Shown: positions 19,352 to 54,500 of the stretch, in pieces
Position numbering within the stretch: position 1 is the first letter of the stretch
Layout of the letters: each line of letters begins with the position of its first letter
DNA from: Paragordius varius
Taxonomy: Eukaryota > Animalia > Nematomorpha
DNA: 64,000 bases
Assembly (NCBI GenBank): GCA_964247055.1
Contig: OZ176055.1
Coordinates: forward strand, 6,262,001 to 6,326,000
Reading direction: 5' to 3'
The notes under the pieces: generated by a model
The model's database searches: none
Seen by the model: the letters and a program-made list of their open reading frames with translations, nothing else
Told to the model about the DNA's origin: nothing
Translations under genes and position numbers: made by a program

Positions 19352-19394
<43 letters not shown>

Positions 19395-25300: not shown

Positions 25301-28300
25301 TTTTGACGAAATAGAATAGAGATGTCTTACTTTCTATACAATTTACAAAATAAAAACAAAATATACTATACTTGTTCTTTTGTCGCTGATAATGTAGGTT
25401 GTTGCATTCCATTTTCATCTTGTTGGACTGCTGGAAATTGATCTTTTGTATCAGTATCAGAAAGGGAAATGCGTGAAGATGATGCGTTTGAAGTGGAAAA
25501 ATCTTCCATCATGCTTGCTTCTGTAAATTTTCATAATATGATAAAAAAATTTCTATAACTAACGAACGACATTTTATTTTGTGAGAATCAGTCTAATTCA
25601 TGTCCGAATCGAAAAAAAACTAAAAATCTAAGTTTATTATTATAAATAATATGTTATGATATTGGTAATATTAAATAATATATACATAAGCAATTTATAT
25701 AATAAATTTAAATTATATAAGTTTGTTTAACATTTTGATCAAGAATATATAGATAATTTTACCATATCAAAAAATATGGTAGGAGATAGAATGAAAAACT
25801 ATGCTAAACCTCGAAACTGTACAATTTTAACATTACTATCAGCCCTGGGCAAATAAAGCTTTTTATCCCTAACTGATAGGCCCTTAACTTTCAATGAAAA
25901 AAAGAAAACAAGAGAATCTGCCCTCCATAATTTATTTTAATAACCAACGTTAATAATTGGAATTATGGTTAGGATTTTTACCGGATATCGGAGCCGGTCA
26001 AAAGCAGGACGGTCATAGTTAGTGATTAATACCCTAACACAAATCAGTGTTCCAAAAAATAAAATACTAAAGTTAACCAATCACTAGTAATTTTTTGAGG
26101 ATTTCATCTATTTTTACGATTTCATAATAAAGAATGGTTTGTCTGAATAACATGCATTACAAATCAACTGGTAATTTCGATTAATTAAAATACCGGCAAG
26201 ACCCAATCCTAATTACAATCGATAATTATTATGTCTCATCATACCAGAAGCACTGGAATGCGAAGATGATAAAAGAGACATTTTGTCCTCTAACATAGGT
26301 AGCTTATTGTGGCGAATCCCATGGTGCTGAGATTTTCCTACAGAAAATGGTTGGTGTTGTTGTGATTCTGAAGTGGATTTGATAACACTTTGAATACTAG
26401 TAGTAGGAGTCGTATAATTAAGGCGAGAGGCAGAAGCATACTTTTTAGCACCTATCAAAGGATATTGCACATCTTTACCATCAACATTGTGTAAATCATT
26501 GTAAGCGTGGCTATTTTGGGCTGCATCAAAAAAATCTTGATCTAGATTATGTGGGGAAGAAAAATGTTTAAATTTTGGTTTTGAGAATACTAAATATAAT
26601 GATTCATTAAAACAGCGTGGTTTAACGGACAAACAACAATATGATGAATGATTGTAAAACGAAAAAAAAACAAATTATGCTTGGGAAAATTATCTTTCGT
26701 GTAGTACATGTTGCATATTGTATGCGAGCATAAAACAACTTGCATAAGATTTTGGTCATAATTTGTATAGAATCCTAACCTAAACTATGTTGCGTCAAAG
26801 CCGTAGGCACATACGGTTCAGAGGTTTTCTTCGCCGTAACTTTTTTGGATAATCTTTTTTCTCCGCCCATGTTTTTGTTTGTAGCGATTGCTTTAGAAGG
26901 GAATTGTTCATCACTTTCTACCGCTTGTGTTTGTGATAATCTACGATCTCTAAGATTGGCATACAAAGCACTATTGCTTGTATTACTCGTCTTTTGCTGA
27001 GCATTAACAGTTTGCTGGCTTTGTTTGGTCATTGAACGGAGCAAGAGATTGGAACATTGGGTAGCCAGGTTAATGGCATCCATCCAACATTTACCTTCAT
27101 TAATTATTACATTAAAAGTGTAGAATTAAGAGAGCAAAATTTTAGGTTTCTTCTTGAGGTGGTCAGATTAAAAAAATATATAGAGCGTTTGGTTAAATCC
27201 TTATCCAAAATCAATTATATAGAATTTTTCCATGTGATTAAACAATTTTTAATCACATAAATGGCTGACATAAACATAGTCAGAAAATTTTGCCGTATCC
27301 AAAAGAAAATAAAAAAATAAATTCTTAATTTACGTAAAACAGGTTTTTGTAAAATATTTGTTTATTTTGATGAAGGACTGTAAACTATAATTAAGATATT
27401 TATATATTATATAATGTTTAAATAGATTGGCTAAAAATTTACCGCAAAAAATATAAAAAGTGGTAATATAAAAAACAAAAAGGTCGCTACTAACTAAACA
27501 ATGTTAATATTAGCTAGATTTTTAAGATTATTAAATCATATTACAAAAATACTCTCAACTAAATCCAACCACATAAATAAATGCAAGAAATAATCTTATG
27601 ATTAAGATATTTAATTGCATGTGCGTACCAATCAAATTACTTAATTATATAAAATGGTTTCATAAACTATAATATATATGAAAACGTAATTACACACATT
27701 AGTAAATTGTATGACAAAGTGCAATTTTCGGAGATAATTTCCAAAAGATAAAAAAGACTTAATGAATTATTAAAAAAATTAAATGCTTTTATATGTGTGT
27801 GTTCATAAATGACGAAATGAATTAACTAAAAAAATAATCAATAAAAAAATGCTAACAAAAATATATCTATGAAAAAATAAAAAAATAATCATATACCTGC
27901 ATCTTCATTTGTAGCTCTAAATATTAAGTAAGCCGATGGTAGTGGGATAGTAAGGGCTCCAATTGTTTCCCCTTTTGGCCCCTAAGATTAAAATATATTT
28001 GTTGTTGAAAAATTAATTAAATTTTAAAAAATTATGACAACATTAAATTTAATGATACCTTAGATGTCCAAATAGATTCACCCATGCTATGAAAAATTTT
28101 GAAACAAAATCCAGCCTTTTTTGATGGTCGCTCAATTACGTGACACGATGTTAGAAGTATGGTCCCAACCCATTTTCCATTCTAATTTTAATTTTTATAA
28201 ATACTTTTTCGGGTGTGTTATTGTATAATATCATGACGCCAGGTTTAAGTATACAATATAATTTCGTCCATCCCTTTAAACTGCCTCGGACCTTTAACCA

Positions 28301-28463
28301 ATCCGATAAAATTATGACAGATGGATCATTTAGTAAATCTAAAAATTGCTGGGCTGCTTTATGTTTTTCAGCTAAATAATTTTGTTTTTGCACCTTTATA
28401 TTACTAATATTAAACTTTGTGGGATGGCTTTCTATTTAAATTCGTGTCCGATACTGTTGTCAT
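17253..28463 (-). CDS. OSBPL8: Oxysterol-binding protein-related protein, ORP5/ORP8 type (20 exons, ~1005 aa)
   Basis: Exons (minus): 28463-28416, 28393-28205, 28181-28059, 27981-27897, 27094-26780, 26589-26245, 25520-25372, 25096-25000, 24552-24381, 24219-24138, 23463-23365, 20646-20550, 19859-19663, 19350-19225, 18835-18738, 18629-18479, 18382-18246, 18103-17971, 17722-17548, 17452-17253. All introns GT-AG and in frame. PH domain (SDWLKVRGSLKGWTKLYCILKPG), ORD motifs LPTFILEPRSFLDKL, KKPYNP and EQVSHHPP, RPWDPLND, and C-terminal TM tail VIVLSLVFFILQIFIIYYLRR. This is the single ORP5/8 co-orthologue type, so the symbol is approximate. Confidence 0.93.
19352..19392. repeat. (TA)n microsatellite; similar runs at ~4479, 19866, 20340, 20702, 33890, 42819 and 43520
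   Basis: Direct inspection. Confidence 0.9.
19903..20085 (+). mobile_element. 5'-truncated RTE-clade LINE 3' end (antisense, in an ORP5/8 intron)
   Basis: Translates ILFGLVDGTRRRGRPKKRWIDVLKSITNL...QDRLKWRTLI...SL*, the typical RTE/BovB C-terminus (GRRRRGR..RW.D...DR..WR), followed directly by a short (CAA)n tail. Confidence 0.75.
20762..23206. mobile_element. Two degenerate Penelope-like element fragments in inverted (head-to-head) orientation
   Basis: Plus copy ~21900-23206: RT motifs MGLALSPMADIFME (22080), RYVDD (~22169) and LSFLDVLI, then GIY-YIG-like GPGI.EIACSC...EQTGR (~22690-22760). Segment 20762-~21750 is the reverse complement of ~22185-23206 with many substitutions. Both lie in the 2718-nt ORP5/8 intron. 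Confidence 0.8.
28182..28204 (-). other. 23-nt micro-intron (ORP5/8 intron 2)
   Basis: gtatttataaaaattaaaattag; removal joins ...YNNTPEK|NGKWVGTILL, restoring the conserved PH-domain sequence. Retention frameshifts to a stop. Confidence 0.9.
28394..28415 (-). other. 22-nt micro-intron (ORP5/8 intron 1)
   Basis: gtttaatattagtaatataaag; joins MTTVSDTNLNRKPSHK|VQKQNY (compare ORP8 KKESLK-VQKKNY) and supplies the only nearby in-frame ATG. Confidence 0.8.
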
Positions 28464-29198
28464 ATGGTAATATACTAAATCTCATATGTTTGCATTCCTG
28501 ATGATTATATAAATTTTGAATTGATTTTTTAGCGCAACATTATGATAATGTTAGCTGCTTTTTGGAATTATATAATATATATGATAATAAAAACATTAGG
28601 ATTAAGTTATATTTTTAATGAAAGATGCGATTTATAGGCTAAAAAAACATTTTTGAATTTGGCCCAATACCTTTAACACTTAGATCTAAAACATTATTGT
28701 TAGATACCCCAGATTGGTTTAAAATTTGACATTTTAAAAAATATAGGGGCACTTACATAACATTAATGTACCAAAATATAAAAAAAGGTTTATTAATAGT
28801 AGATAATAATAATAAAATGGTGAAAGATAAAGGTAAAAATTTAGCCAGCATGACATGTGTGCATAACTTAAAGATGAAAATAATGCGTATCATACCACTT
28901 TCTCTATTTATATCAATGTTAAATGTGATTATAATAAAAAAGTAAACTTAATTTTGGACTTGGAATCAAATAAACACGATATTTTGCAAAAATGTTGTAA
29001 AATAAAAATAGCTTCCAAGTGTTTGATACGGATTTTTTTAAAAACAAATTTTTATTTACATATTATATTTAGGATAAAAGCATATTAAATTAAAACCGTT
29101 TTTTTTTCAATTTCAAAAATATCAAATTAAATATTCAATTCAAATCAAAGTGTTATTAATCCTTATAATAACCAAATTGGATAGTTTTGGGGTATACC

Positions 29199-32100
29199 TA
29201 AGGTGACCAGACGTCCCGCTCTTTCACACTTTGTCCCGCGTCCCGCTGCGTTTTTAAAATGTCCCGCTTTTTCACGATTATATAAAAAAAATTTTTTTTA
29301 ATACAAATAAATTTTTTTTATCCGTTTAAATTTTTTATCATTAAATATCTTTAACACTTCGTTTCAAATTGGGGTATCTAAATACCCCAGACTGAATTTA
29401 AATTAAAATTTTTAAAAAACTACTGAAGGAAACGGTCCCAATTTAAATTTATACTTCTATCCTGATAAATATTATATAAATATGCCAAAATATCTTGATA
29501 AAATTTTGTTTTGAAAAAAAAGTTCCATCACAAACTACTTCGACGCCATTTTTATTTTGCAAAATATTGTCTTCATTTAATTTTAAGGGTAAAACTAAAG
29601 CTTATTTTTTATATAAATTTCTAACATTGATAGAAATAAAAATAGCGGTTTATTTTGTATTATTTTTAAATTTTACAATTTGACACATGTCAGGTTGATT
29701 AAATTTTTACCTTTCGGTTTAAGCTTAAAATAAGTAATATCAAGTATTTTTGAATAAAATTTTTTATATATTTCGGTTTATTAATGTTATATAAGTGCAA
29801 AATTTTGCCATGGTTTTGATTGCTTCCATACTTTTTAAAGTATTTGATTTTAAACAGGCCTGGGGTATCCAACTACCCCAATTTGAATCGAAGGACTAAA
29901 ATGAGTGTGTTGCATCCAAGTGTTAAAATCTATATAAATTTTAAATTAAAATGTTTTATTTTTAAATTAAAAATATTTATTTTCTTCGAATTTATATTAT
30001 ATGATAATACACTTTCCTTCCTACTACTACTGTCATCATTATTAAAAAGCCAAGTTAACACCACAAATCTCTAGATTAAAAGACAAATTGATACCCCAAA
30101 TCGGTACCTTACACGTTTCTTCCAGAAAATTAAGGTAATATAATATTTTTTACACTAATAGTAGTTTATAAATATGAGCACAAAAAGAGGTTGTAAATTC
30201 AACGATGAATTAATGAAAGATTTTTCTTTTATCAAAAAAACAAGAATGAATCATCTGTTAAATGTCTTATATGCGAGGGGGAATTCACCCTAGCACATGG
30301 CGGCAAACATGATATTACAAAGCATATGGAAACACAGAAACATAAAAAATGTTTAGATATGGCGGCATCATCTTACAAAATGAGCGATTTTTTTGAAAAC
30401 CGCTTTTGGAGAGTAAGAAAAGAATTTGGCACTAGCTGAGGGCGTGTTATCCTTTCATGCCCTTAATCACAATCATTCTTTTAGATCTATGGACTGTACC
30501 TCACAGGTTATTCGCACGTTATTCCATAAAAAATAAGGCTGAAGCCATGTGCAATGTCCTTTCGCCACATGCATTTTCTGAAATACAAAAAGATTTGCTA
30601 AAAATTAATTTCTTTTCCCTATACTCTGATACTTCATGACACCATGAAACAAAATTATTTCCCACTTTGATAAGATATTTTGATTCAGAAACCTGAGTAA
30701 AAATTAAAATTTTAGATTTAATTTCCCTACCCGGTGAAAATTCCGAAATAATATTTACTTCAATAATGCATATTCTAGAAAAAAATAATTTAAAAGACAA
30801 AATTATCGCATATTGCGCTGACAACACCAATACGAACTTTGGTGGAAAAGCAAGAAGGGGACCAAAAAATATTTTTCATAAATTAACAGATAATCTTAAT
30901 CAAAACATTATTGGCGTTGGGTGTGCAGCGCATATAATACACAACGCTATTCAAACAGCTGCTGATTTGTTACCCCTAGATGTGGAAAATGTAGTTGTTA
31001 AAATATATTCCTATTTTTATATATACACGGTACGTGTTGAAACGCTTAAAGAATTTTGTGAAAATGCAAAAGTTCAATATCAAAAAATGCTTGGATATTG
31101 TAAAACTCGTTGGTTAACTTTTATGTCAGGTATCGAAAGAATTTTAAAATTGTATGATCCTTTAAAATCTTTTTTTTATCACAGGACAAATGTCCTACAA
31201 CTTTAAAAAATTTTTTTGAAAGTGATTCTTCAAAAATATGGTTAGAATTCTTACATATTCAAGCTTCTCTCTTTCAAAATGTTGTTAAATTTATAGAAGG
31301 TGGCAAAATTTCGGCAATTGAAGTAGCCATTGATAGTAACCTAAAATTCCAATGTCAAGAACGGTTAGAAAATAATTTTATACCATAAACCCGACATACA
31401 ATAAATAATTTAGAAAAACAAGGCTTAATAAATCGCCAAGTCCTGTACCATATAAAAATGTTTTATACAAACTGTAAGACTGAACGACGCAATTTAATGA
31501 AATTGATCATTTTCATTGGATAACATTTAAATAAGAATTTAATTGGTGCTCGAAAATCATTTGGTTATATCTGCTCCCAAAAATTATCAAAAATTCAGAA
31601 AATGATCTTTTTTCTGAAGTATCATTAGTTAAAAGATATATTAATAATGAAAAACTTAAATTATGGACAAAAGAAAAATATGCAGTAGAAAAGAAATGGT
31701 TGAAATATTTTATCATTTTGAAGCCAACTATATTACATACAATAATATTTTAAAAATTGTGGAATTCGCACTATCTTTACCTGGAACCAACGCTGCTACT
31801 AAGCGCGTTTTTTCCACAGTAAATCAGGTGTAGAAATCGGAAAAATCAAATTTAAATGTTGAAACTTTAAAGGCCGTTTTATATGTCAAATATAATTTGA
31901 CAAATTCTGAAGACTTCTACAATATTTTAAAAAATGATGACAATCTACTAAAACGCATTCATTCAAACAAAATATACCAAAGAATAAGATATTTTCTTTA
32001 AAGTTTTTGTGTTAAAAAATAAACAAAATTACTTAAAATATATAAGTCTTCATAATTTGTCAAATTATATTTGAACACATAAAATGGCTATTTAACATTT

Positions 32101-32982
32101 AAATTTGATTCCGTGTCCTTTCTACTGTGGAAAACGCCTTCAATAGCAGTGGTTCAGGTAAAGATAATGCAAATTCCACAATTAAAATATTATTGTATGA
32201 AACATAATTTGTTTAAAAATGATTATTTTAACCATTTCTATCCTACGTATTTTTTTATGTTGTCCATAATATAAGTTTTCATTCAATATATTTATTTAAT
32301 AATGAGACTTCATAAAAAAGGTCATTGTGCACCGTCTTGTCTTCCAAATAATCGTTTCTGTTTGTATAAAACATTTTTATATTCTGGCTATTCATTGAGC
32401 CTTGTTTTTCTAGATGATTTATAATATTGCGATTAGGTAATGGTATAAAATTATTTTCTAACCTTTTTTGACTTGGAATTTTGACCTTTGTGCTGTGATA
32501 AAAAATAGGATTCTAAGAGATCACATTTTCATAAATGTATCAATCGCTGGCAAAAGAGCAAACCAACAGTTCTACAATATCCCATTTTAACATCTATATT
32601 TTCCACATCCAGGGGTAACAAATCAGTAGCTGTTTGAAATGCGTTGTGTATCTGCCAATATAATGTTTTGATTAAGATTATTCGCTAAATTGTTAAAAAT
32701 ATTTGTGCCGCTTCTTGCATCACCCAGCGCACTTTGTGATGATTTCGTCTTTATTATTTTTTTCTAGAATATACTTCACCCTTTGTTCGTGCACATGTAA
32801 ATTTATTGAATAAAATGTAAACAACCTGTAAGGTACAATTTTTTATATTTATAATTTGTGTTAAAAATAAATAAATATTACAATAAATTTTTTGTATAAA
32901 AATTTTTGGTTGTACCCCCCAATGACCCCCCCCCCTTCTCAGATTTGTCCCGCTTTTTCCTTCAAAAAATCTGGTCACCTTA
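29199..32982 (+). mobile_element. hAT-Blackjack-like DNA transposon, 3784 bp, with disrupted transposase
   Basis: Perfect 13-bp TIRs TAAGGTGACCAGA / TCTGGTCACCTTA and a perfect 8-bp TSD GGTATACC (29191-29198, 32983-32990). Transposase remnants ~30174-31990: BED-like finger, YCADNTNTNFGG, GCAAHIIHN, KTRWL and hATC LSLPGTNAAT.RVFS, with several frameshifts and stops. Confidence 0.92.
29355..29922 (+). mobile_element. piggyBac-like MITE (568 bp) nested in the hAT element
   Basis: Flanked by TTAA on both sides (29351-54, 29923-26). Ends CACTT...AAGTG. The ~20-bp inverted repeat CTTCG(T/A)TTCAAATTGGGGTA is terminal on the left and set inward by a spacer on the right, an asymmetry typical of piggyBac. 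Confidence 0.8.
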
Positions 32983-33886
32983 GGTATACCAAAATTTAAT
33001 GGACTGTTAGTAATACAATTCGGAGAACGGTTTTTTTATACAAAAAAGGTATGAGGTCATAAAAAATAAAAAATGGACAATATTGGTTATAAATTCACAA
33101 TAATAGTTTCTGGCCCCTAAGTTAAAACCCATCTATTGTAAAAACAGGGGTTTTAAAAAAGGTTCTTGAAAAACGGGTCTTTAAGATATTTTTCTGGAAG
33201 GTTGTGTCCCGAATATTTATATTACGAATGCATCTATCACAGCCTGGCCATTGTTCAAAATAAGCATCTGCATTGGCCCTCATCTTCATAAATGACATTT
33301 TTGCAAAGAAACGAAGTCGACAAAAATAATTTACTAAGTTATAATTTGCCTAGCCACAATGCGTTCTAAATCGGGGGCATAATAAATTGGTGAAATATAT
33401 AGTTTGATAGGAAAAACTATCAACATAATGCATTTGATTTTGGGAAGTAAGTTATCTATTCTTATGTCTTGAGGCTCCATATCAGAAAATGGCAAAATTT
33501 GGGCAAATATTTTTGCAATAAGGCCAAATGCTTTATTGTATAAAATATCATTAAATAGTATTATTATAAACTACCGATAAAAAGCAAAATATATTTTCTA
33601 AAATATCTTGATTTTTAGATGTGGGCTTTAAATATCCATTTTTTGTTCTTCTAAATTCGCTAGTTTTTTAAAAAAATTTACGCAAAAATACCAGGATTGT
33701 GCGATAGTGACATCCAAAAAATTTTAAAAAAATGCGTACCTTATATAAAAATTTAATTTTTAACAAAATTTTGTTGACATCCTATTTTTAGGCATGATGA
33801 AAACGGTATAAAAAGCTTTTGGATATTACAAAAAACTATTTCTATATAACAATGCGTCCAAATTGGGGGGTATAAAAATATCCTGA

Positions 33887-33920
<34 letters not shown>

Positions 33921-36349
33921 TGATAGAAAAATGTATTAGAATTATCAAAATCCTTTATTTGGACCTTATCTATATTTTCAGGCTTGCCATAATATATAAC
34001 CATTTAGTAACACAAATGTCGCAGGCCGTATTTTTGACTCAAAAAACCCGGTGCCACATTTGTAATTTATATGTGCATTCATAGGATATTAGTAAACACA
34101 TATCAATTTTCTATACTGTCACTAACAGTGTAAAGTGCAAGTTTAAAGGTCATAAACTCTAATACCACTAAAGAATATTTTTATGTATGATCCTAATAAA
34201 AATTAACCTTGGTAAATTATTAATTTCAGCAATTTAAATGGCCAAATTATCTATTAAGTGAATCATAACTCTTTATTGTTATGATATAAATGAGACATTT
34301 ACAGGATAAATGATGGTACAATCATGTATTTAATTCAAGTTAAGGTGTAAATGACAGAAAACCCCATCTTTATATAAAATACCAACATATTTTGGAGGTT
34401 AATGTTTAACCTACCATTGATATCAAAAGTTAGAGTGCTTCATATCAAGGTATAAATTATAAAACCCAAATTTTTGAGGACAGAGTTTACCCCGTGTCAT
34501 AGAGTAAGACGTTCGTTCTTGTTGTGGACAAATGCGCGTATTAAACATGGATAAACACTGTCAGTTAGGGTTGTATTATATATATATATACTGAACATAT
34601 TAAGTTAACTACAATTGTTGAAAGATAAAAAAGATAACTTAGAGTTCAACGAGGGCAACGAATGACTAAGATCAAATGCTTTAATTGTTTAAGATTATAT
34701 AGGTGCGTTTGTGTCAACATCAGTAGGCGCTACTCTAGCATAATTACAAACTGCTTATTTTACAAATATTCACCCAAATTTTAAAGCAAATGAACCTTTG
34801 GGAACATCAATGGATTATAAAAGAAAAGTGTTATATTATCTTAAAATTTTATACTATTTCCACCATGCTTCAAAATACCATAAAACTCGCTTACTAAAAT
34901 TTTATTTTGATGTCAAAATATAGTATATATTTAAAATTTTTACCGCGCAACATCGGGATTTTGCGGTTAATTTAGGAAAATTTCCTATTTTAAACGGACC
35001 CAAAAAAAATTTTCGGAACCTACATCTAAAATCAGAAATGCTTTTTATATGTAGTTTATAATATATTTTGGTAATTTTTTTGAAGCATTTAGCCTTCACA
35101 CAAAAATATTAAGCATTTGGGCAAGTTTTGCCATTTTCTGTTATAGCACCTACCGCAAAAGTGGTAATAACTTTAATATATCATTTGCAAGGCTTCAAAC
35201 CAAAAGAATCCTGATATAACTAAATAGCAGAATATATAATTATTTCATCAAGATTTTTTTATGTCCACTGTGATATGGATTCAATACAATCTGTTTAATG
35301 TGTCCTAATTTATATTAAAATAAATAAGTTTTATTGCCCATCATTGATTAAACAATTTAAGTTAAACAATTATAAATTATAATTTAAAAAATATAATCTG
35401 ACCTATTTTATTGTAAATTAATTATAATTATGGATATTTTTAGATATTTTAAGAGATCAATTTGGAAAACATATCAATTATGTTAATTAGACACTAACCT
35501 ATTTATTCGTATTATAGGTAATCAATATGCTATAGCATATACTCATGCTAAATTACTATTGAACTAATGCCTTCAATTAATTCTCATCAAATTAAACCAA
35601 TTTAAACTTTTCATTAGTTTTTCTTTTTTAGACTATTTGGGTTATATAACTCAAAGCTTAAACTTGTAAATAAACTACTGTTTAAAGTTGTTTTGGTTAT
35701 AATTCAATTTTAAACATCGTTCGCTTTTAAAAAATGTCTTTTTTACAGTTTTTAGCTTCTGGAGCCCCAAAGTGGGAGAGCTCCAAAACACCATGGAAAC
35801 TGATTTTAAAATGATTAAATAACAAAAATTTGCTGGTAAAATATAATTTAAAACCTTTTTAAGGTAAATTATTGACACTTTTTTATTATACCTGTTAGCG
35901 ATTTAGACAAAAAATGGCGGCGAGCAAGTTTGAGATGAGGATATTAATAAGTTTTTATTTTAAAAAAATTGTTAACCCCATAGCCTTTTTGTGTTAAGGA
36001 TCGAAGACGTATAAAAAAATAGATAGGACTTTATGACTCAATAAAAAATCTACTATTTAAAACCTGGTTTAAAATCATATTTAAAAGGTATGAAACGGAT
36101 AGAGCTTATAATACTTGTTCTAAAAAAATAAATTCGATGCATATTCTATGTGAGGTATTTTTAAAAATTCCAATTATGCACCCGGCCTTATGTTTACGAT
36201 TCTAAAAATGTTTCTGTTGGGACAAAATTTTTCACATCAACATATGTTGGTAAAAACATTTAATTAAGGTCATTTTGAAAAATACTCACTAAAATAGATA
36301 CATATTCTTAAGTATAACCATAATTTATTTTGTAATAATTCCCCAAAAT

Positions 36350-37742: not shown

Positions 37743-38273
37743 ACTAAAAAAATCTCTGTTTAACAAAATTTGATGTTAAAAAAACTGGAAAAATATTTTT
37801 AAACTTTAACACACATTAACTTAATATAAGTAACTGAAAAAAATAAAAGTTTAGCTAAAAGGTTACATAGTTTTATAAAATCGCAAGTGTTTTTGACACT
37901 AAAAATTATTGTGTCATCATTGTTTAAAAAAAATAAGTTAGTTCATTGTTTTACTTTTGTTGAAAATTTTATTACCACGTTCCCATATATAAATATAACA
38001 CAGAAAATATAATTTAGTTATTTAAATAAATATTCACAATTTATTCACAAAATAATTTGGACATTATATCTATAATAAAATATTTTAAAATATTGCACTG
38101 ATATTATCACATCAATAATATATCTAAATAGTATTGTATTTAACAAAATAGGTTTGGAATGTTTCACAAATTTGGTTTATGATTATATATAAACATTATT
38201 GTAATTAAAATAAATAAATATAGAATGTTTGAAATTCGGCATATTATTGCAAAACAGGAAAGTGTATCTAACG

Positions 38274-40375
38274 TTATTTAAATGGGTTATCTGGTATAAA
38301 ATTATCGCTTATACATGGCTGTTTTGACAATATTTCTAAATTTTCATCTTTACCAAAAGAATTTGCTTGATTGACCACCAAAGAGTTACCGCCATCCTTT
38401 TCGGTGCTTTGGACATTAAGAAGTAATTTATCATAACGTTCCGCTAAATACTTTTTTCGCTGGAGTAATTCATCTAAACTTAATTTTTGTGTTGTATCAT
38501 CAACAAAATTATCATAATTTTGATGGTTATCAACAAGCGAAGGTAGTTTTCGATACCCACTACCACCATCAATTTTATTCGAATCAACCGTACTCTTAGG
38601 TGATATATGAATATGTAAAATATCATTCCTATTTTCAATGTTTGTGTCAACGCTGTATTCATTATTATATGTATTTTTAGGTAAAACATTTGGTCCTGGA
38701 ATGTCATCCATGGAATTATCAAGAGAGACTGAAGGTGATTCTGTTGTATTGTTAGTATAAGGCCCAAATTGGCGGCTCTAAAATATAAGTCAATCAATAT
38801 TTCAGTTATTGAAGACGAATAATTAGAGATGTACAGTATGCATATTTTTGTGGCTTATTCACATTATTGTTTGATCAAGTGGGTTATAAACTGAGTTTGT
38901 CCAGAAATAAAAAACAAATTTATGTTGTTAAATAAAGAAAAATTGTTTCTTTTTACCATTTTTATGTCTTTTGCCATACACTACTGTGTTGCCAATTGCA
39001 ATAATGTGAGTAAGCCAGCATAAAAATTCAATACTATATGAAACAGTATCAATTTATTAAATTATTTATAAAACTGAATTGTTTATGCCTAAAACATTGA
39101 CCATTATCTTAGTATCTTGTTAATTGACTCTATGCCGGAGTAAAAAAACTCAAGTAATTTCATAGCTCAATTGTTTTTTTGGATGATAAATTTAAAGTCA
39201 CCATTTTTGTGGCTAAAAAATCGGATCCTTGCGTAACTCAAAAAGTGGGAGGAAATTAGAATTATATAAAATGTATTTTATGGCTTTACATATATAAATT
39301 TGATTTGCATGGGCCGTAGTAATAATAAACACGTTTTTTTAGTAACGTTACTGTTCGAAAAAGTATAATAGAGTGTTATTTTGGCTTATGTAAAAATTAG
39401 ACCAAAAAATAAAATATTGAGAATATGCTGTGTATTATGCGAGATTGTTTCAAAAACGTATCCTTGACTATATATTACGCAATTTATAATGAAAAAAAGT
39501 CATTTTTTTAACTTTACTAAAATTTCTACTAACTTAAGAATAAAAAAAATTTTGCGAAAATTATATTTTAGGAATAATTCGGTATTATCAACACTAAAAA
39601 ATTTACATACTATTAATCAAATATTTAAAATGGATTATCTGATTTAGGTTTATTGAGTCATTTAATTTTAATATGTAAACATATTGAATCATATACTTTT
39701 TCGGTTAAAATGGGTGAATCTTCAAACTTGATTTCATTTTTCGAAATACTTATAGCCTATGATTTATAATTTTATTAACCTTTTCCAATAGTTTTTGTTC
39801 GACTTTATACCGTTTTTGCAAAATTTGATATTCAGTTTTTGAGAGTTTTTTAACCTTTTCAATATCGTTTTCAAACGCTTCCATCTCGGTTTTATTTTGT
39901 ATTTCAAAAGCCTCCTTAGATAATCTACTTTTATTAAATATATACTTGAGTGCTTGTTTGAAATCTGAATCATTATCATAATCGGTGCAATGTAAAATGG
40001 GGGTAAATTTTTGTAAATTATTGGTTATATATTTAAAAATAGCAATATCGTAGATGGCAAAGATTGGTAATATAATACTCTATAAAATTATTGGCTAAAA
40101 ACCTCAAAACTTGCATTTATTTTATTTTTCGATAACATGAGATTCATAATTTTATCCCTTTCTATTTCTTGTTCGGCTAGAAAATCATTCATGATTGGTT
40201 CAAACTACCAAAATATATTAATTAAAACCTTCTCCTTATAAAATATATGATATGCAAGGATGTAGTCGTCATCAGGTATCGATTTGTAATTTGTAAAAAA
40301 ATTAAAAATTTCAGTTTTCCATAATGAAGTATTGGCAAATGACACCAAGGATTCTATCAGCCAATCCTCTTCCAT
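38274..40375 (-). CDS. CFAP36: Diverged cilia- and flagella-associated protein 36 (BART-domain, CCDC104) (4 exons, ~350 aa)
   Basis: Exons 40375-40229, 40204-40103, 40079-39780, 38777-38274. N-terminus MEEDWLIESLVSFANTSLWKTEIFNFF resembles CFAP36 [37 protein letters not shown] resembles ILQPVLAAEDFTIF; C-terminal DELLQRKKYLAERYDKLL resembles the QREEYLRQQRDKL motif. Length is similar to the known protein. Confidence 0.72.
40080..40102 (-). other. 23-nt micro-intron (CFAP36 intron 2)
   Basis: gtttttagccaataattttatag; phase 0; retention gives an in-frame TAA; removal opens a further 100-codon exon. Confidence 0.8.
40205..40228 (-). other. 24-nt micro-intron (CFAP36 intron 1)
   Basis: gttttaattaatatattttggtag; length is 3n but it ends in an in-frame TAG, so it must be spliced. 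Joins YKEK|FEPIMNDFL. Confidence 0.8.
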
Positions 40376-44374: not shown

Positions 44375-45103
44375 CTAGGCAACATAAGGGCTTGTGTACT
44401 GTTTAGCCAATACTGTTTTTAACACATTCGTGTACGTATAATCAGTCAGCGTATTGAATTGTAATTCAATGTACACGCCAGACAGGCATTTCAGTAGGGC
44501 ACTTTTACTCGCTATGTAAAACATTTTGTCTCTCATGCTAGCCTCAGGCGACATCCAAAGGAAAAAAATAAGTTTACTTGAAGTTTGATTCGTAGTTGGA
44601 TTAAGATAGGTGAAATCGGTTAACACGTATCTACACTGCCCGGCATCTGATATATGAATAAGCTCTTGCCAAAGTGTTTCGTGCGAAGTTTGATCATCAA
44701 ATATTTTTTCTACTTGAATATGCGTTACACATTTATCCGTATTCGCCTTTCCTGGTTCACTATCCATAGCATTTTGATCATTTACCACATTAAATATGAT
44801 ACTTTTAATCTGTTTCTCCATTTTCAGGGTTTGAAAGGTGTTCAAACAATCCTCATGCAAAGAAATACTATGTGAACTTGTCTTACTAATCGAATTTGTA
44901 AGATGACCTTTACCTCTTTTGTCTTTCAATAAGTCATGAAACTTACTTTTACTAACTTTCATATCATAATTATCCAAGGCTTGGTGTGATGTACTTTGGG
45001 AGCCAATTTTAACATCCAGGTATGATCCTTTGGTTGAAGCTAAGCAATCATTGGTACTATTATCATATCTAAATGAATGAGTATTTGCTGTGATGTAAGG
45101 CAT
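44375..45103 (-). CDS. Intronless ADF/cofilin-family protein with ~75-aa N-terminal extension (242 aa from first ATG)
   Basis: ADF-H motifs: SISLHEDCLNTFQTLK, IIFNV, CRYVLTDF, KLIFFLWMSPEASMRDKMFYIASKSAL. First ATG at 45103; the ORF-track start at 45151 is TTG in a T-rich tract. Confidence 0.85.
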   Translation of the reverse strand: MPYITANTHSFRYDNSTNDCLASTKGSYLDVKIGSQSTSHQALDNYDMKVSKSKFHDLLKDKRGKGHLTNSISKTSSHSISLHEDCLNTFQTLKMEKQIKSIIFNVVNDQNAMDSEPGKANTDKCVTHIQVEKIFDDQTSHETLWQELIHISDAGQCRYVLTDFTYLNPTTNQTSSKLIFFLWMSPEASMRDKMFYIASKSALLKCLSGVYIELQFNTLTDYTYTNVLKTVLAKQYTSPYVA

Positions 45104-46399
45104 GGTTTTTGAAGCATAAAAATAAAAAAGTAAAAATAAAAAAAAATTCAAATCATATCGTTTAAGAATGTGTTTAAGGTTAAAATAAACTAAGTTCTAA
45201 ATTATTATAAGCTATATCATTTAATTATAAATTAAATGGCAAGTAATTTTATGAAGTTTATATATATCTATGTCATTACCACCCAGCTTAATTCCGATGA
45301 AAAATTATAAATCAATAAAAAATATTTAGGTTAAAAATTCACTTTTAATTTGATAATTAAATTAACTAAGGAGGAAAAAATTTTGCTTACAATAACTAAT
45401 CCATAAAATATCATATCCATAATGCATATCTTTAAAAAAATAAAAATTTATATAGAGTTAACAATTTATATTCAAATATAGCGCTTTACATCAGTTTATG
45501 CACGGCTTTAAAATATTGCTCTTTTTAGAATAATTCATATATTTGCAAAAATGATAATTTTCCAAGACTAAGGTATTCCGAAATACCAATCAAAAGAATT
45601 AAGAATTTAATCTTTTTACTAGCATTGTGAGTAATGTTAATAATGGCACTAAATGTTAACCTAATAGAAATATTGATAAAAAAAATAAAAATATCTTTTA
45701 TAAATGCCATAAATCTAAAAATGATTAATATATAAATACGTTTTGCCATGTTACTATTGCGGAAGGATTTCAAGTAATTTTGTTTTAATGAATTAAAGAA
45801 AGTATATTACTTTTTATATATAGTGAACATTAAAAATTTATTTCACAAAATTATATTTAAATAATATACAAAAATCCGTTTAAGTAACGCCCAGTAATTG
45901 TGAGAAAAATAGCGATATTTCTGGGAGACTAAAAAACCTAAACAGTTACAGTTCAAAAATAGTATAGGTCTGGGTTTTTGGTGAAATATTTACATTTCTG
46001 ATAAATCTATAAAAGTATATTTTTGGAATAGTTAGACGGATATTCATCAATAAACCTGTCAAGCGTTGTTTAAGGCAGAAAATTATAATTTAAAACCAGG
46101 TTGTCACTGTATAATAAAATTATTATACACTATAAAATTAAATAAGGTAGAGCTTGCTTCTGCGCAAGCATATTATTTATGTAATTGTAATTTAATTTTA
46201 TTAAGGGTATTTAAACGTTTTGTAATTGGCTATGCAATTTCAATTTCATTAGTAGCCATCTATCTATTTGCATATACCAGCTCCAGTCATAATTAGTTAT
46301 CAGTTTAACCAAGAAAAAGCAAGAAAAATGCAGCCGATTAACTTCACGCCATTTCGCTCACATAACAGACGAAAACATATATGGTGATTCTGTCAAAAC

Positions 46400-47250
46400 T
46401 AGCGTCTTACTTATTGTTAAATTTGTTGAAACCTGTGCCTGAAAAAGAACACTTGCTGCCATTGCCATCAGAAGAAAAAGGCTGTCGAAAATTGGTTGGT
46501 AGAAACATATGGAAAACATGTTCAATTAATTAAAATGTGCATGTTTTGAAAAATTAAAAGGTTGTCTTTTTCGAGGCTCTCTGGTAGACGAGAGTGATTA
46601 TCCGACTTCAATCAAGGAATTGGCAGGAGCATTACATGTATCACGAAAAACAATTGGTATACGTCCACGCGCATTGGGAAAGTTTAATAAACTCTGTAAA
46701 TGGGTAACACACACAATTTGAATGAACGTCGAATCAAAAATTGGAAAGGGTCCTGAGAAACCCAAAGGAAATTATTTTGCATAGAATTGTTACGGGTGAC
46801 AAGAAGTGGCTTTACTCAGTCAATTCAAAACGGAAAAAAAACGCCCCTTTCCCTTCCCAAGCCGATCTATCAACATCAAGACCAAATTCCTTCGTCAAGA
46901 TTATGTTTCATTTCTGGTGGGACCAGATCGGTATTGTATATCATAAACTTTTGAAGGAAATCATACATTAATGGAAAAACGACCAAAAAGTCCAGATGAC
47001 ATAGCAAAATGATTTTGCTACAAGACAATGCTACGACCGCAAAAACAGTGAAAAACAATTAATAATCTTTGATATAGAATCCGCACTGAACTCCGTTCAC
47101 TAGCCATCTGACTATTATCTCTTCTCTCAATAAGGCACCTCAGAGTGCAACGCTTGAATATTTCACTTTGGAAAATGACTTAACGAATGGATGTTCAAAA
47201 AATAAAATCGGTTTTTCTAGCAACGTGGAAGCCGATGAATGATACTTTAT
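46400..47250 (+). mobile_element. Degenerate mariner transposon relic
   Basis: Fragments PTSIKELAGALHVSRKTI (HTH-like), LHRIVTGDKKWLY, FWWDQIGIVYHKLL and LLQDNATTAK (LHDNA-like), with frameshifts. TIRs not established. Confidence 0.8.
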
Positions 47251-48929
47251 ATAATATACAAAAAACAGGTAAGACTCATGACTTCAACTAGTAAATAAAC
47301 ACTGTATAGCCTTTTAAGCGTGTTATTCAAAAAATTCATTGTAAATTTGTCCCTATATTTACGTTTTTATAATCGCTATTAAAATTTGGTATATTATTTA
47401 AAGGTTTTTTAGTGGAATTCAAATATTTTATTATAAATTATCAGATATTTTTATAGTAATTTTAATATAATCTTTTATATGGATTATGAAAGAATTTAAG
47501 TTTTGACGATAGAAGTTACAAAATGTTGCTTTTTTGACAGAGAATTAACCTAATATATTTTTAATACGTCTAAAAAGTATGTATTTTAACATAAATCTTA
47601 TGCAAGTGCTAACGCACAATACCGGTAAAATATTATTTTATCTATTATAAAGCGTATGATTTTTTTTGAAATTTAATTTTAGGAGTCCTCAAAATATAAT
47701 CATAAAAATGCCGAAATAAAACTGGATTTGTATTTTTAGCCCAAGATATAATATTGGAGGTTTAAAAATTCAGGACCATGATTTAATAAATTTTTTTACG
47801 CTTTTTTTTTATAAAAAAGGCCCTGACCATGATGTCATTTATAAAAAAAAAATTATATCATAATGGGACATCCATTGCGTTTCCGGGAATCGATACAATA
47901 TATAAAATATGTTAAGGGTCTCTTAAGGAGCAATAAAGCCTAAACTCATAAGCATCATGGAACATGGCATAAAATAAATAATTCATTGATGTATAAAATA
48001 CATTTTATTATTTTTTTTAAATCTATATAATTATAAAAATGAGTAAACAATATATCAGTACGAATGCACCGTTTTGAAATTCCTATGAGATCATAGCTAT
48101 TAAATAATGTTTGGAAATAATTCATATATGTGGATCATTTTATTGTCCCTTTGAGATTTACGCTAGTAACCTATATATATATAGAGGATGCAGATTAAGA
48201 ATATGCGCATACCTAAATAAAAAGCAGTTATGTCTAAATGAAACAAACCAATATTTCTATGATTATATAGATAAGTGATACTCAAATGGCGGCTCTAAAA
48301 GGCGTCCTGATTTAAATCTTTTTGATTGCTTAAAAATATGACCAATATTTATTTTTTTAAAAAAATTCCGTGTTTTTCGCAATAAGACAATTTTATTATA
48401 TGAAAAAGATTTCCTGCTGTTTTCTTTGATACTTATACTATCGATAATGTTATAGGAAATTAAAGGAATTCGCAGAGGATAAGGTTTTTGGCAAGATGTG
48501 CCAAATATATATTTAATAATAAAATAGTTATAGTATGTTAAAAGACAAAGGGATTATAGATTGGTTTGATAATTAGATTTGTCAATAAATAGCGGTTTAT
48601 ATTAAATTATGTCCATTTTACAAAGATTATATGATCAAAATATTAGTATATAACCCGCAAAAATCTAGGTGTACTAATTTACCTTATGGGTATACCAGGA
48701 TTAAAGTAATACAGTATTTGTCGGTATTATACTGTGGCCTTTAAGGCAAAAAACTTATTAAATCCGTTAAATTGGGTGAGTATCATTGATATAGATTTTA
48801 ATGACATAATATAGAAAAAAACATATATTCGGTATATAATAATAAAATAATCTAAATTCCGATTACGATTTCTTCAATTTTATTTGTAAACAAAATATTA
48901 ATAATATGATATATAAGAGTAAAATAATA

Positions 48930-49273
48930 TTAATCTTCAGATTCTGCAATAATTTTTAAGCAATCTCTTGCTAGCATCTTGTGAGGAATTATGTCTTGTA
49001 AAAACTCATAAACTTCATTAGAATTTACAACTTCGGCAAGATTTTTATAAGTTATATCATGAGAATCAGCATCCTTAAAACAAGATTTTGAAAGATTGGT
49101 TATAAAGAGTTCCTTAAAATTAAAAAAATATTTACTGTGGCTTTTGAAATTATAAAGAGTGAGTCTTCGCTTATATTATTTAGCTTCTCAATGTCTGGAG
49201 AACTCTTTATAATGGTTTTGATGCGACTAAATGGAAGTAAAGGGAACGCCTTATGTTTATCCCAAAAACTCAT
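48930..49273 (-). CDS. CHRAC1: Chromatin accessibility complex histone-fold subunit CHRAC1 (CHRAC15/16) (2 exons, 106 aa)
   Basis: Exons 49273-49136 and 49112-48930: MSFWDKHKAFPLLPFSRIKTIIKSSPDIEK...IISKAT|ELFITNLSK...ITYKNLAEVV...YEFLQDIIPHK. KSSP and FL.DI.P.K distinguish CHRAC1 from POLE4 and NF-YC. Confidence 0.88.
49113..49135 (-). other. 23-nt micro-intron (CHRAC1 sole intron)
   Basis: gtaaatatttttttaattttaag; splits the highly conserved histone-fold KAT|ELF exactly in phase 0. Retention frameshifts to a stop. Confidence 0.92.
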
Positions 49274-49367
49274 TGAATTAATGTACACACATATTACAGA
49301 TGTATCTAAACTTCAGATGGTCTTCATGCTGGGTAGTTTAATATCTATGCTTATTATATTATATTAA

Positions 49368-49949
49368 CACTTGGATACAACACACTCATTTTAGTCCTTC
49401 GATTCAAATTGGGGTAGTTGGATACCCCAGGCCTGTTTAAAATCAAATACTTTAAAAAGTATGGAAGCAATCAAAACCATGGCAAAATTTTGCACTTATA
49501 TAACATTAATTAACCGAAATATATAAAAAATTTTATTCAAAAATACTTGATATTACTTATTTTGAGCTAAAACTGAAAGGTAAAAATTTAGTCAACGTGA
49601 CATGTGTTAAATTGTAAAATTAAAAAATAATACAAAATAAACCGCTTTTTCTATTTCTATCCATGTTAGATGTAATTTATATAAAAAATAAGCTTTAGTT
49701 TTACCCTTAAAATTAAATGAAGTCGATATTTTGCAAAATTTTTGTAAAATAAAAATGGCGTCGAAGTAGTTTGAGATGAAACTTTTTTTTCAAAACAAAA
49801 TTTTATCAGGATATTTTGGCATATTTACATAATATTCATCAAGATAGAAGCATAAATTCAAATTGGGACCGTTTCCTTCAGTAGTTTTTTAAAAATTTAA
49901 ATTTAAATTTAGTCTGGGGTATTTAGATACCCCAATTTGAATCGAAGTG
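49368..49949 (-). mobile_element. piggyBac-like MITE (582 bp), second copy
   Basis: Near-identical reverse complement of 29355-29922; TTAA at 49364-67 and 49950-53; lies 95 bp upstream of the CHRAC1 ATG. Confidence 0.85.
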
Positions 49950-51542
49950 TTAAAAATCACATAATTTTGCTAAAAATTTTGTTTTACATTTCTCGATACG
50001 TTAAACTTGGCATTTTTTTAGAAAAAAAATTAAATTGGGTATGTCAGCAATTTTTTTTGGCATTTATTGATGTTAAAATTTTATTTTAAACTCTGTTTTT
50101 GGGCAGGAACCTGAGAGCAAAGTGTCTGTTTAATGCATTATGACATCTTCAGATTTGAATAATGGCCTAGTTTCTCCAAAGCTCCAACTTGTGAAACTAG
50201 TGTTTTGAAATTGCTTTTGTTATCAAACATCGCTCCACTATATTAGATAGAAAATATATAATTTACAGTTTTAGAACAACAAGATTCCAGAGTCTGTAAT
50301 CAGGACATCTCCAAATCACTAGTGAAATAAACAGTTAATATATTAAAATTAATAAAATAAAGTTTTAGTAAAATGCAGTCTGAAAGGTTATTAAAGTAAG
50401 TTACATTTGGCGATATAAAAAAATTAGGGAAAAAAATTGCGGCGAAAAAGATTAAGACGAGGTTTTATTGAAAAAAGTTTTTTACGCATGCGAATTAAAA
50501 GCTAGCGAAAACATATTTTTGAATTTAACCGATTACCTCTAAAGTTAAAATCTCTCGATAAACACAAAAGGTCATAAAGTATACAGACTACCAAAAAAAT
50601 TGGACCTACCCCATTAATATATTTTTTTTGGCTTTTTCTGAGGTTAAAAGAAGTAGGATTCCCAATAGATTTGGCTCTTTAATGATACATTTTCATGATA
50701 ATGATCTTATCACTTCAATGATGCCGCAATTAGATGGCAATCTAAATATTTTAAAACCTAAGAGATTGAATAAAGTATTAAATACCAATTTGGAATTAAA
50801 ATTATAAATATATTTAAAAAATAAAATTGTAAATCTTTATCTAAAAGCTTCAATATACTAATATTTTATTCAACACAAATGTTGATGTTACAATGTTTTT
50901 TTGCTATTACGAAGATGTAATTTAGTCAGCTTTTATGGTTAGAGTAGTGGATATTACCTGTTAGAATGTTAGCCTCTTGTCCCTTAAGTAAAATTATAAA
51001 TTTAACGCGTTATGAAGCCCTCATTATCACATGAGCTGACATTCTATGTTTGCTCGGCGTGCTGAAAGATAGAAACCTTATTTAGACCAATAGATATATG
51101 TCAAATTTGATTTATAATTTCAGTTTTTTTGACTTTATGCTAATTTCTCAAATATCACATTTCGAAAGCATTACATCACTATTGTAGTGTCCAACTCTGT
51201 GCGTAAAAATTCTTAAGAACATCAGAGATTTGATTAGTCTAATTATGGTAAGTACACTGTGAAGGACTTAAAAAATTAGTTATTTTTATCTACATTTTAG
51301 ATTCTTATAATTAAGTTATGCTAGTTATGCATGTTCTTTTTATAAGCCTAGAAGGCCCTAAAATGCGTGATTATTGCTAAAATAAACAAATAATTTTTGG
51401 GTTTCGTTTTCTAATAAAGGGATAAATTATTTCAAACGTTAAAAATTTGATTATTTTTTATTTTTTTTAAAACAAAACTAATACTAAATTATCTTCTCAT
51501 TTAGCTAAAAACTTATATTTCTGAGTTCACTGAAAACGTGAA

Positions 51543-51567
51543 TTGGCGCTGATTTCAAAGTTCAAAA
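51543..51567 (+). promoter_or_regulatory. Candidate E2F/CDE plus CHR (DREAM-type) element upstream of TopBP1
   Basis: TTGGCGC (51543-49) followed after 3 nt by TTTCAAA (51553-59) and a second TTCAAA (the reverse complement of CHR TTTGAA), 17-40 nt before the ATG. Motif match only. Confidence 0.35.
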
Positions 51568-51583
51568 TACATATGTTATCGAT

Positions 51584-54500
51584 ATGGAAAGAGTTGTAGA
51601 TCAAAATTATTTTTATTTTATTAAATCTAATACCGGGATCGGCGATATTTTGTTGTCAGCTTACAAAGTTTATATATATTTAAGTATATTTAGTCTTTAG
51701 AAAATAATGGATATCTGGTAAAATGGGTAGCCGAGCATGAAAGCATTGACATAATAAAATCTTTTTGCAAAACAAGCATCGTTTTTTTCATATGTGAAAA
51801 CTTTGAAAACAAATTTTTTGAAACTGTTTTGCAATTTCAGTCCCAACATATTAAGTATATTTAAATATGTAATAAATATAGATTATTGGGACCGTCAGTT
51901 ATATTATCTTGTTTGATCGAAAATTTACCAATTCCTAATTGGGAAGTACCAATTCATAATATGGCAATGAATGGAATGGTTGTATGTTGCACAAATATTA
52001 ATAATGACCAAAGAGTAATTAAGAATTTTTATAAATAAATAATTTATCATTAATGAACAAACAAATATGTGTTTTATAGTCTGAAATCTTTCAACTTGTA
52101 TCTCGAATGAAAGGGGAAGTTTTATTACATTTAACCTCATCAGTAACGCATCTTGTGACTGGCCGAGTTGGTTCAAAGAAATTTTTGATTGCACAACAAT
52201 TGGATATTCCAATTTATCAACCAACCTGGGTTTATAGCGCTTGGAAGCGTTCACAATCTGAGTAAGCTATTAATGGAACAAATATTGTTTAAATGGTTTT
52301 TATTTAAATACCTTTTTTAACTCTCACGAAACTTTATAAAGGGTAAGTAAATATTTGGATCTAAGTCAACTTACGACAAATTTATTTTTTATTAACCAAT
52401 TATCCAAAATTAACTCACTTTTTATTATTACGCATCATTAACTAATTTTATGTTAAATTTTTTATGTGCCTTTTTAGAATTATAAATGCCGATGATCCTA
52501 GTTTTAGTGGTGATAAATGCCCACTTTTCTTTGGTTTGATTATTACACTCACTCAATTTGATTCGGAAATGCGCAATCAAGCTAAAGAATGGATTGAAGA
52601 AAATGGTAATATTTTGATTTAAAAATTTTCCAAGATTTTAATATAATTATTTGGTATTTTTTAAAAAAATTAAAACTGATTTAATTAAAAATTATTGCGT
52701 TAAAGGGGGAACATATACGGGCGAAATGAAAATGAACCATGCCACCCACCTCATAGCCAAAGAACCAACAGGTTTTGAAACATATATTTTTTTTTTATTT
52801 TTTTTAAACAATAAAACATTTTTATTTTTTACATTTTTTTCGACAAAAAGGTACCAAATATGTCCATGCATGTAAATGGAAGAATATCCATATAGTTTCA
52901 TGGGCATGGTTGGAGGATTGCGTTCAACAATCAAAATTTTTAGATGAAACACCCTATCTATTGACTACCTCTACTACGATAAATAATAATAATAATAATA
53001 ATTTTAGTGCTAAAAATCATCCAACAATAGAGAAAAGCTTAGAGATATCAAAAAGTAACCCATCAGGAGATCTTATAAAGGATACAAAAATTGAATCTTA
53101 TCTTGCAAAGACGAATGATGGTGATTTACAACATACAACTAATTCAAACTTTACAACAATAATGACTAATTTAGGTTTTTTAAGGATATATTTTAAAGAC
53201 GTATTTTATATAAAAAATTTATTTATACCATAATTATTTTTTAGGTGATAAGAATCCAAGGCATATGAATTCTGAGAATCGTAGATCGTCATCTAATTTT
53301 AACATAGATTTTGAGGTTCCTGATATGCAACAAAACATGAATGATAAACCTGAAAAACGGTATTTTCTCATCATATTTTAATAAACGCTACTTTAAAATT
53401 GGAGTAATTTTTTTTGTATGGATATATTTCCAATATTAAAATGTGAATTTGTATCAATAAATACAATATAATTATTGGTCATTAATTATAGTTTTTTTTA
53501 ATTCTTATACTAAAGAACCACTGAAACTATGGCTAAACCCATGTTTGACAATGTGGTTAAAAATTTGATACAGCAATATCGGAAAGAATCTATCGACCCT
53601 ATGGAAAGCATTGATATCGATCTCAAAACTCATAATTCTGAGATGGAAAATAAATTAAAAGCACCCATTCCATCTTTTATCGCCGAAACAACTAATAATC
53701 CTGGTTAGTATTTTTATTAACAAATAATTTCGAAGATTTATAAACCGATGAGAGTGTTGAAATATATTAAATTATTTTTATAAATTATAGATGAATCAAA
53801 TATTTCTTTTATTCAGCCTGAAGGAATATCCTTTTTGAATACACCCACGAGTAATATAATTATGATAATAATAATTCATATTGCCTTTTTTTCATTATAT
53901 ATATATATTAGATTATAATTTATTATTGTTTTTCTGAAAAAACTTTTAAATCCTTTTAAAAAATTTAATTTAATGTTATATTAATTTACATTTCTATTGT
54001 TGTAACTATAGCTGGTGTTGTAAGAAATCAAAGTTATATGGTTTTTCTCTTTTCAACTTAAAATTTTTTTGTCTCATACACTTAAAATTTTTTATCTTTT
54101 TTATCTCTTATTTTTTACTGCATTATATATATTTATGCATATGTAAAAGGAGGAAAACCCGATGTATTTAATGGTAAAACTTTCTTACTTTTCCAACCCT
54201 TGTCCGATGATATCGTTAGCGGTTATGCTAAAATAACCCTCATGGATTGTGATGATTTATGTAAAAAGATTAAATGGTTAAGGGGTGTCCCACTCAAACG
54301 TGCAACCAAAAAGAATAAAGATACGATCGATTACATAGTTTGTCCCTTCTCATTAATCCCCTGTGCTAAAGAACAGAAACAAAAGCATACTGCCATAGCA
54401 ACGAATCAAGTAAATACGCTCTTTTTTTACAATGTTAGGATATTTTTTAATTTTTAAGGCTAAATATTTTTTTTAAAAAAACAGAGTTTTATTCATATTT

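Follow-up and report, generated by a model that had tools for sequence, protein, structure and literature searches.

We analysed a stretch of 64,000 nucleotides (nt) of the nuclear genome of the horsehair worm Paragordius varius (Nematomorpha, Gordiida; contig OZ176055.1), hereafter called the window, in which four genes are interrupted by seven intervals of 22–27 nt that we refer to as micro-introns. The window is A/T-rich (27.5% GC). Its minus strand carries an ORP5/8 gene (17256–28463, delimited by tblastn with the Gordionus protein XP_065321945.1), a gene tentatively named CFAP36-like on weak support (39753–40375 and 38277–38777) and a CHRAC1-like histone-fold gene. A TopBP1 gene with BRCT exons lies on the plus strand (51584–64000) and extends past the end of the window.

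Results

Two of the seven intervals belong to the ORP5/8 gene: a candidate intron 1 of 22 nt (28394–28415), which joins a 16-codon exon with an ATG to the PH exon, and intron 2 of 23 nt within the PH domain (28182–28204, phase 0). Two further candidates, placed by the logic of the open frames that they join, are introns 1 and 2 of the CFAP36-like gene, with 24 nt (40205–40228) and 23 nt (40080–40102). The CHRAC1-like gene has a sole intron of 23 nt (49113–49135, phase 0), while TopBP1 introns 1 and 2 measure 26 nt (51668–51693) and 27 nt (51855–51881, phase 2). A preliminary description of this DNA, made from the sequence, had listed intervals of 22, 23, 23, 23, 24, 26 and 27 nt, and we found all of them at the places given there. 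Each is present once in the window, and all start with GT and end with AG.

The preliminary description had further called these introns obligatory, which agrees with our analysis: retention breaks the frame in seven of seven cases. Retained introns of 22, 23 and 26 nt cause a frameshift, the 24-nt intron contributes its own terminal TAG as an in-frame stop and the 27-nt intron an in-frame TAA, so that both micro-introns with a length divisible by three contain an in-frame stop. Once all seven are removed, the products are open and sensible. Six of the seven are in phase 0. Every one of them is intron 1 or intron 2 of its gene, and adjacent pairs occur in ORP5/8, the CFAP36-like gene and TopBP1, that is, the micro-introns show the 5' bias and the clustering of the microintron class described from flatworms.

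For direct evidence we used four sequencing runs of one study (X1–X4), all of which contain the CHRAC1 stretch; X1, X3 and X4 derive from the same sample. Contigs of these runs were aligned to positions 48800–54700 of the window at 95% similarity, and X4 was realigned at 80%. X1, X2 and X3 have the character of genomic DNA, their contigs covering intergenic DNA as well as introns. X1 and X3 contigs cross the CHRAC1 intron (48926–49279) with 0 gaps, and the TopBP1 intervals are likewise uncut in contigs of X1 (51599–51918, 0 gaps), X2 and X3 (51317–52369). Compared to the window, the contigs of these three runs contain single nucleotide polymorphisms and no length change. Since DNA contigs cross the micro-introns at unchanged length, the latter are not longer introns that collapsed in the assembly, an outcome that the preliminary description had named as one to be checked.

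Run X4, in contrast, behaves as cDNA, with zero depth in intergenic DNA. At 95% similarity CHRAC1 and the first TopBP1 exons remained unplaced in X4, despite 67% of the CHRAC1 sequence words being present in the run. We guessed that a 23-nt gap lowers the similarity below the threshold, and realignment at 80% confirmed this. A 335-nt contig on 48900–49217 skips exactly 23 nt after position 49112 (depth 61.3 of 61.3). In TopBP1, a single 622-nt contig on 51642–52260 skips 26 nt beginning at 51668 and 27 nt beginning at 51855; the same contig has a GT..AG joint from 52014 to 52080, which corresponds to the removal of the ordinary 65-nt GT-AG intron 3 (52015–52079). Introns of 26, 27 and 65 nt are thus lost from one transcript contig. 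Further downstream, another X4 contig on 52906–53169 and 53240–53359 skips 70 nt; the five nucleotides common to both ends allow a 5-nt shift, after which the skipped segment reads GT..AG (ordinary intron, 53175–53244). No unspliced X4 contig across the CHRAC1 or TopBP1 micro-intron exons was seen at 95% similarity. The transcript check proposed in the preliminary description supports splicing in these cases: 23 nt in CHRAC1 and 26 plus 27 nt in TopBP1 are cut out exactly at GT..AG borders, so that three of the seven micro-introns exist as segments of the genomic DNA and are missing to the base from RNA of this organism.

The RNA evidence consists of assembled contigs of one run, X4, whose library type is unrecorded, and on these grounds the segments might be missing for a reason other than splicing, namely an artefact of the assembly or of the contigs, a retrocopy or programmed DNA elimination. 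Against this speak the exact coincidence of the three gaps with GT..AG borders, to the base, and the removal of the 65- and 70-nt GT..AG introns in the same run. Moreover, X4 has no intergenic depth and DNA of the same sample contains the segments, which also lack the TA-bounded ends of sequences eliminated in ciliates. We regard this explanation as extremely improbable and close to refuted. A ciliate germline with internal eliminated sequences was rejected as well, given the standard code, the metazoan-type genes, the GT..AG ends and the presence of the segments in all three DNA runs.

Two observations were made alongside. A second X4 contig passes the end of TopBP1 exon 3, covers the adjoining 65-nt intron up to 52044 (52015–52044) and continues with at least 255 letters that are absent from the window; an alternative joint, or an insertion in an allele left unspliced, could account for it. 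In three additional RNA runs (X8–X10), which bear the same species label as X1, the locus is absent, and one 5,259-nt contig of X10 matched 41 nt of a conserved TopBP1 exon at ~80%. The species label of X8–X10 and the sequenced animal may therefore denote different taxa.

Protein homology provided a second line of evidence. The exon pieces of TopBP1 and CHRAC1 are collinear with solved structures and with Pfam: TopBP1 exon 3, downstream of the 27-nt intron, aligns to residues 79–121 of a TopBP1 structure chain, the alignment starting at residue 79, and exon 4 to residues 123–181. CHRAC1 exon 1 matches positions 3–33 of the 65 positions of the Pfam profile CBFD_NFYB_HMF, and exon 2 matches residues 68–103 of Drosophila CHRAC-16. 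A protein search with CHRAC1 exon 2 for transcript-derived or orthologous proteins gave no match.

In the ORP5/8 gene, the piece upstream of the 23-nt junction corresponds to residues 3–37 of the human ORP8 PH chain and the downstream piece starts at residue 40 (E values of 1e-12 and 1e-16). The junction is also collinear with ORP5 of Gordionus. This orthologue emerged from a HMMER scan with a 65-residue ORP exon, in which an ORP5-like protein of 890 residues from the nematomorph Gordionus sp. m RMFG-2023 was the best full-length match. Compared with the window by tblastn, Gordionus ORP5 reached 903 bits in 13 collinear pieces of 36–98% identity (weighted mean ~73% over 544 aligned residues); identity was 98% across an exon of 57 residues and 84% across the N-terminus, which is poorly conserved. 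The next-best proteins, from a snail, a crinoid, an ostracod, a mite, a tardigrade and a coral, scored 698 bits or less. The GC content of the window also agrees with that of the Gordionus montsenyensis genome, which has 26.9% GC and 64% repeats, mostly DNA transposons (10.1101/2023.06.26.546503). The window thus belongs to a gordiid, though one of a different species. A flatworm source, which the microintron pattern and the A/T richness had brought to mind, was rejected, Gordionus ORP5 being by far the closest match. A search of the ESM Atlas for the lineage yielded bacterial look-alikes only and was uninformative.

The codon boundary of the 23-nt intron is interrupted in Gordionus ORP5 as well, there by an intron of 2,795 nt (positions 3172–5966 of Gordionus locus L001). 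The next intron of the window gene, an ordinary GT-AG intron of 77 nt (27982–28058, intron 3, boundaries from the Gordionus-guided alignment), has a Gordionus counterpart of 6,509 nt (6090–12598 of the same locus). At these conserved positions the Gordionus introns are hence ~120-fold and 85-fold longer than those of the window. The intron position shared with the 2,795-nt Gordionus intron indicates that the position is old and the length labile. According to the Gordionus-guided model, further introns of the ORP5/8 gene measure ~161, 312, 592, 674, 690, 802 and 2,718 nt. Upstream of the PH domain, the open frame of the PH exon contains no ATG, and the start ATG of Gordionus aligns with a GCT in the window gene. 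The candidate 22-nt intron would supply the start codon that the PH exon lacks.

The CFAP36-like gene is less well anchored. Its exon A gave a sub-threshold match to Pfam ARL2_Bind_BART (E 0.03, profile positions 1–39), while the single exon pieces yielded nothing significant against PDB and Pfam, and a protein search with the C-terminal open reading frame (ORF) returned no homologue. The name CFAP36 and the BART-like order of the pieces follow what we take to be the layout of the human protein and serve as a lead only.

We then asked how often open frames are joined by chance, counting GT..AG intervals of 20–30 nt across which open frames of 34 codons or more are joined, and comparing the counts with a null. 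Single joins numbered 39 against a null mean of 28, and double joins 5 against 2.85 expected. Joins are thus not rarer than chance and frame logic was discarded as evidence, so that support rests on RNA and homology. Chance joins being this common, at least one of the 24-nt and 23-nt CFAP36 introns and the 22-nt ORP intron could be a gene-model artefact, namely a chance GT..AG interval between open frames, and for CFAP36 the lack of significant PDB and Pfam matches for its pieces and of any retrieved homologue points the same way. On the other hand, the same design is proven in neighbouring genes (introns 1 and 2, 22–27 nt, A/T interior), the ORP PH exon has no own start codon and CFAP36 exon A has its sub-threshold BART match. 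On balance we consider such an artefact unlikely, and the three intervals plausible candidates.

A gene of this kind touches on another point. Nematomorpha are said to have lost many cilium genes; the CFAP36-like gene, which would be cilium-associated, is apparently present, to the extent that its weakly supported identity is correct.

How the micro-introns are recognized was addressed by comparing them with the ordinary introns. U12-type (minor) introns are characterized by a conserved /RTATCCTT donor and a TCCTTRAY branch site. The seven micro-intron donors (GTTTAA, GTATTT, GTTTTA, GTTTTT, GTAAAT, GTTTAT and GTATAT) do not fit /RTATCCTT. Donor hexamers are equally degenerate in micro-introns and ordinary introns (GTWWWW), and the acceptor hexamers do not differ either. 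The interior GC content is 5.7% in micro-introns versus 11% in introns of 65–77 nt and 14.9% over five pooled ordinary introns (P 6e-4); the extra A/T richness is modest. A-rich stretches occur 6–10 nt upstream of the AG in micro-introns, where composition alone predicts them.

These data bear on the proposal, made in the preliminary description, of a second and mechanistically distinct spliceosome pathway reserved for micro-introns, for instance one without simultaneous binding of U1 and U2, or without U2AF. The absence of introns of 28–64 nt from the window would suit such a pathway, as would the higher A/T content of the micro-introns and the finding that SPF45 replaces U2AF in human short introns whose pyrimidine tract is truncated (PMC8363638). 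The similarity of donor and acceptor hexamers in both classes argues against it, and so does the branch motif: the TTAA/TAAT 'branch-like core' that had been put forward is expected by chance in sequence of ~94% A/T. In addition, in myxozoans with introns of 22–27 nt the branch-pairing region of U2 and U2AF are conserved, and the authors of that study conclude that splicing is conventional and U2-dependent (PMC13644364). An Rfam scan of the window gave no hits, and nothing in the window bears on spliceosome components. With donors alike, a modest A/T excess and a branch motif at chance level, we consider a separate pathway rather unlikely. What stands of the two-class claim is that both classes coexist in the same transcripts (RNA of TopBP1 and CHRAC1); the second spliceosomal mode attached to it is a hypothesis.

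Intron sizes in the window run from 22 to 27 nt, followed by nothing until 65 nt. About 15 of the 47 ordinary introns of the preliminary description were re-derived. They range from 65 to 2,718 nt, two of them (65 and 70 nt) being confirmed by RNA, and none falls between 28 and 64 nt. The empty range reported before thus holds for these ~15 introns.

The window contains further features outside the four genes. A repeat of ~600 nt at 49361–49957 has an inverted copy at 29347–29929, the two being 94–96% identical and 19–20 kb apart. In the DNA runs this repeat reaches a word depth of ~10^6, compared with 10^2–10^3 in unique DNA, pointing to thousands of copies, and it is abundant in X4 too. Remnants of a hAT-type transposase (30697–31833, plus strand) lie near the 5' end of ORP5/8, and further repeat families were found at 9.6–10.8 kb and 41.4 kb. 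A single-exon ORF of 258 codons (44378–45151, minus strand) has a C-terminal part that, judged by eye, resembles an ADF/cofilin-type domain; a word-indexed protein search with this ADF-H-like ORF detected no relative.

Discussion

Taken together, the 22–27-nt intervals are very probably true spliceosomal introns of the U2-type GT-AG kind, carried by a horsehair worm in its nuclear genome. Removal is precise at GT..AG borders, micro-introns coexist with ordinary introns in one transcript, and they sit at the 5' ends of genes. In this repeat-rich animal genome, an apparently discrete class of 22–27 nt shares transcripts with introns of 65 nt to kilobases, as supported by the RNA of TopBP1 and CHRAC1. 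Several points weigh against this view. RNA support covers only three of the seven micro-introns, and it comes from contigs assembled from a single run, in which minor unspliced forms are hidden. For the first ORP intron and the two CFAP36 introns the basis is frame logic, which did not exceed chance. The size gap is seen in one window, and the annotated ORP5 gene of Gordionus, the one orthologue examined, has no intron below 98 nt.

We propose that the micro-introns would constitute a discrete minimal-length class, akin to the 5'-clustered microintrons of flatworms and ~10 nt shorter. They would be recognized across the intron by the ordinary major spliceosome, with a branch adenosine probably located ~6–10 nt upstream of the AG and without a separate pyrimidine tract. 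The class may have arisen through shrinkage of ancestral introns, the orthologous ORP intron of Gordionus measuring 2.8 kb.

Introns below ~30 nt had been thought absent from animals (PMC13644364, Mol Biol Evol, September 2026). A survey of 51 animal genomes in the same study found introns below 30 nt only in myxobolid myxozoans (medians of 22–27 nt) and in Dicyema japonicum, ties them to parasitic genome reduction and predicts further lineages; it mentions neither Nematomorpha nor flatworms. In flatworms, microintrons of 32–37 nt form a separate mode, clustered at ordinal positions 1 and 2 beside kilobase introns, with the pyrimidine tract lost, and they are under-annotated (PMC6530080, PMC4040987). 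The preliminary description, which had placed introns of this size in genomes where almost all introns are tiny, was incomplete in this respect, as both the flatworm microintrons beside kilobase introns and the myxobolid medians were already known. Our own literature search retrieved no report of such introns in Nematomorpha.

The architecture described here is that of flatworms such as Opisthorchis felineus, Gyrodactylus salaris and tapeworms. In both cases the short introns cluster at the 5' ends of genes, as introns 1 and 2, and kilobase introns occur beside them in a repeat-rich genome. In flatworms the shortest introns form a mode of their own next to a second short one, as they would here, and the pyrimidine tract is weak or missing, as is probably the case here too; annotation software with a high minimum-intron setting tends to miss such introns. 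The sizes differ, however, with 22–27 nt here versus 32–37 nt in flatworms, which places the horsehair worm introns below the 30-nt limit and outside the flatworm range. Since Platyhelminthes belong to the Spiralia and Nematomorpha to the Ecdysozoa, the two classes have an independent origin.

In size, the closest parallels are the myxobolids and Dicyema japonicum, parasitic lineages like the horsehair worms, with GT-AG introns of 20–27 nt, reduced motifs and A residues shortly before the AG. There, however, the genomes are compact and poor in transposons, and nearly all introns are covered by a median this short. In the horsehair worm, micro-introns are a minority (seven of ~54 introns by the count of the preliminary description), are confined to gene 5' ends and occur in the same genes as kilobase introns filled with transposons. 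The setting is not that of a compact genome: introns of 65–2,718 nt interrupt the same genes, and hAT remnants and a very-high-copy repeat lie in the window. The case joins the intron size of myxobolids and Dicyema with the architecture of flatworms, in a third phylum.

Introns measure ~25 nt in Paramecium and 15–16 nt in Stentor, and those of nucleomorphs are also tiny. The micro-introns share this size range, and retention leads to a premature stop or a frameshift in these systems as well. To our knowledge, practically every intron is tiny in ciliates and nucleomorphs, which represent unicellular lineages, and a second long class is lacking. A model for a 'second mode' comes from human SPF45-dependent splicing, where a subset of short introns, those whose pyrimidine tracts are truncated, relies on another 3' splice-site factor. 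Its model intron has 56 nt, though, and the human lower bound is given as 'under fifty' nt, with nothing near 23 nt in the abstract of that study (PMC8363638).

This horsehair worm would represent a third, unrelated animal lineage with introns below 30 nt, here demonstrated by RNA, and the first in which they occur in a repeat-rich genome. As micro-introns persist in such a genome, genome compaction cannot fully explain introns this short. There are practical consequences too, because annotation pipelines with a minimum intron length of ~30–40 nt would disrupt many genes at their 5' ends, a problem documented in a flatworm annotation (PMC6530080). BUSCO completeness is 71.6% in Gordionus montsenyensis (10.1101/2023.06.26.546503), and in the light of micro-introns the low completeness of nematomorph genomes deserves re-examination. 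As a speculation that we consider improbable, horsehair worms might splice introns of 22–27 nt via a different assembly route than those of 65 nt or more, and part of the large universal-gene loss reported for Nematomorpha would then be an annotation artefact, since introns of this length are usually disallowed in gene finding and in tests of completeness.

Within the TopBP1 pre-mRNA, introns of 26, 27 and 65 nt stand side by side, and other genes of the window pair micro-introns with kilobase introns. One animal spliceosome handles both extremes, and the minimal requirements for splice-site pairing can therefore be studied within a single organism.

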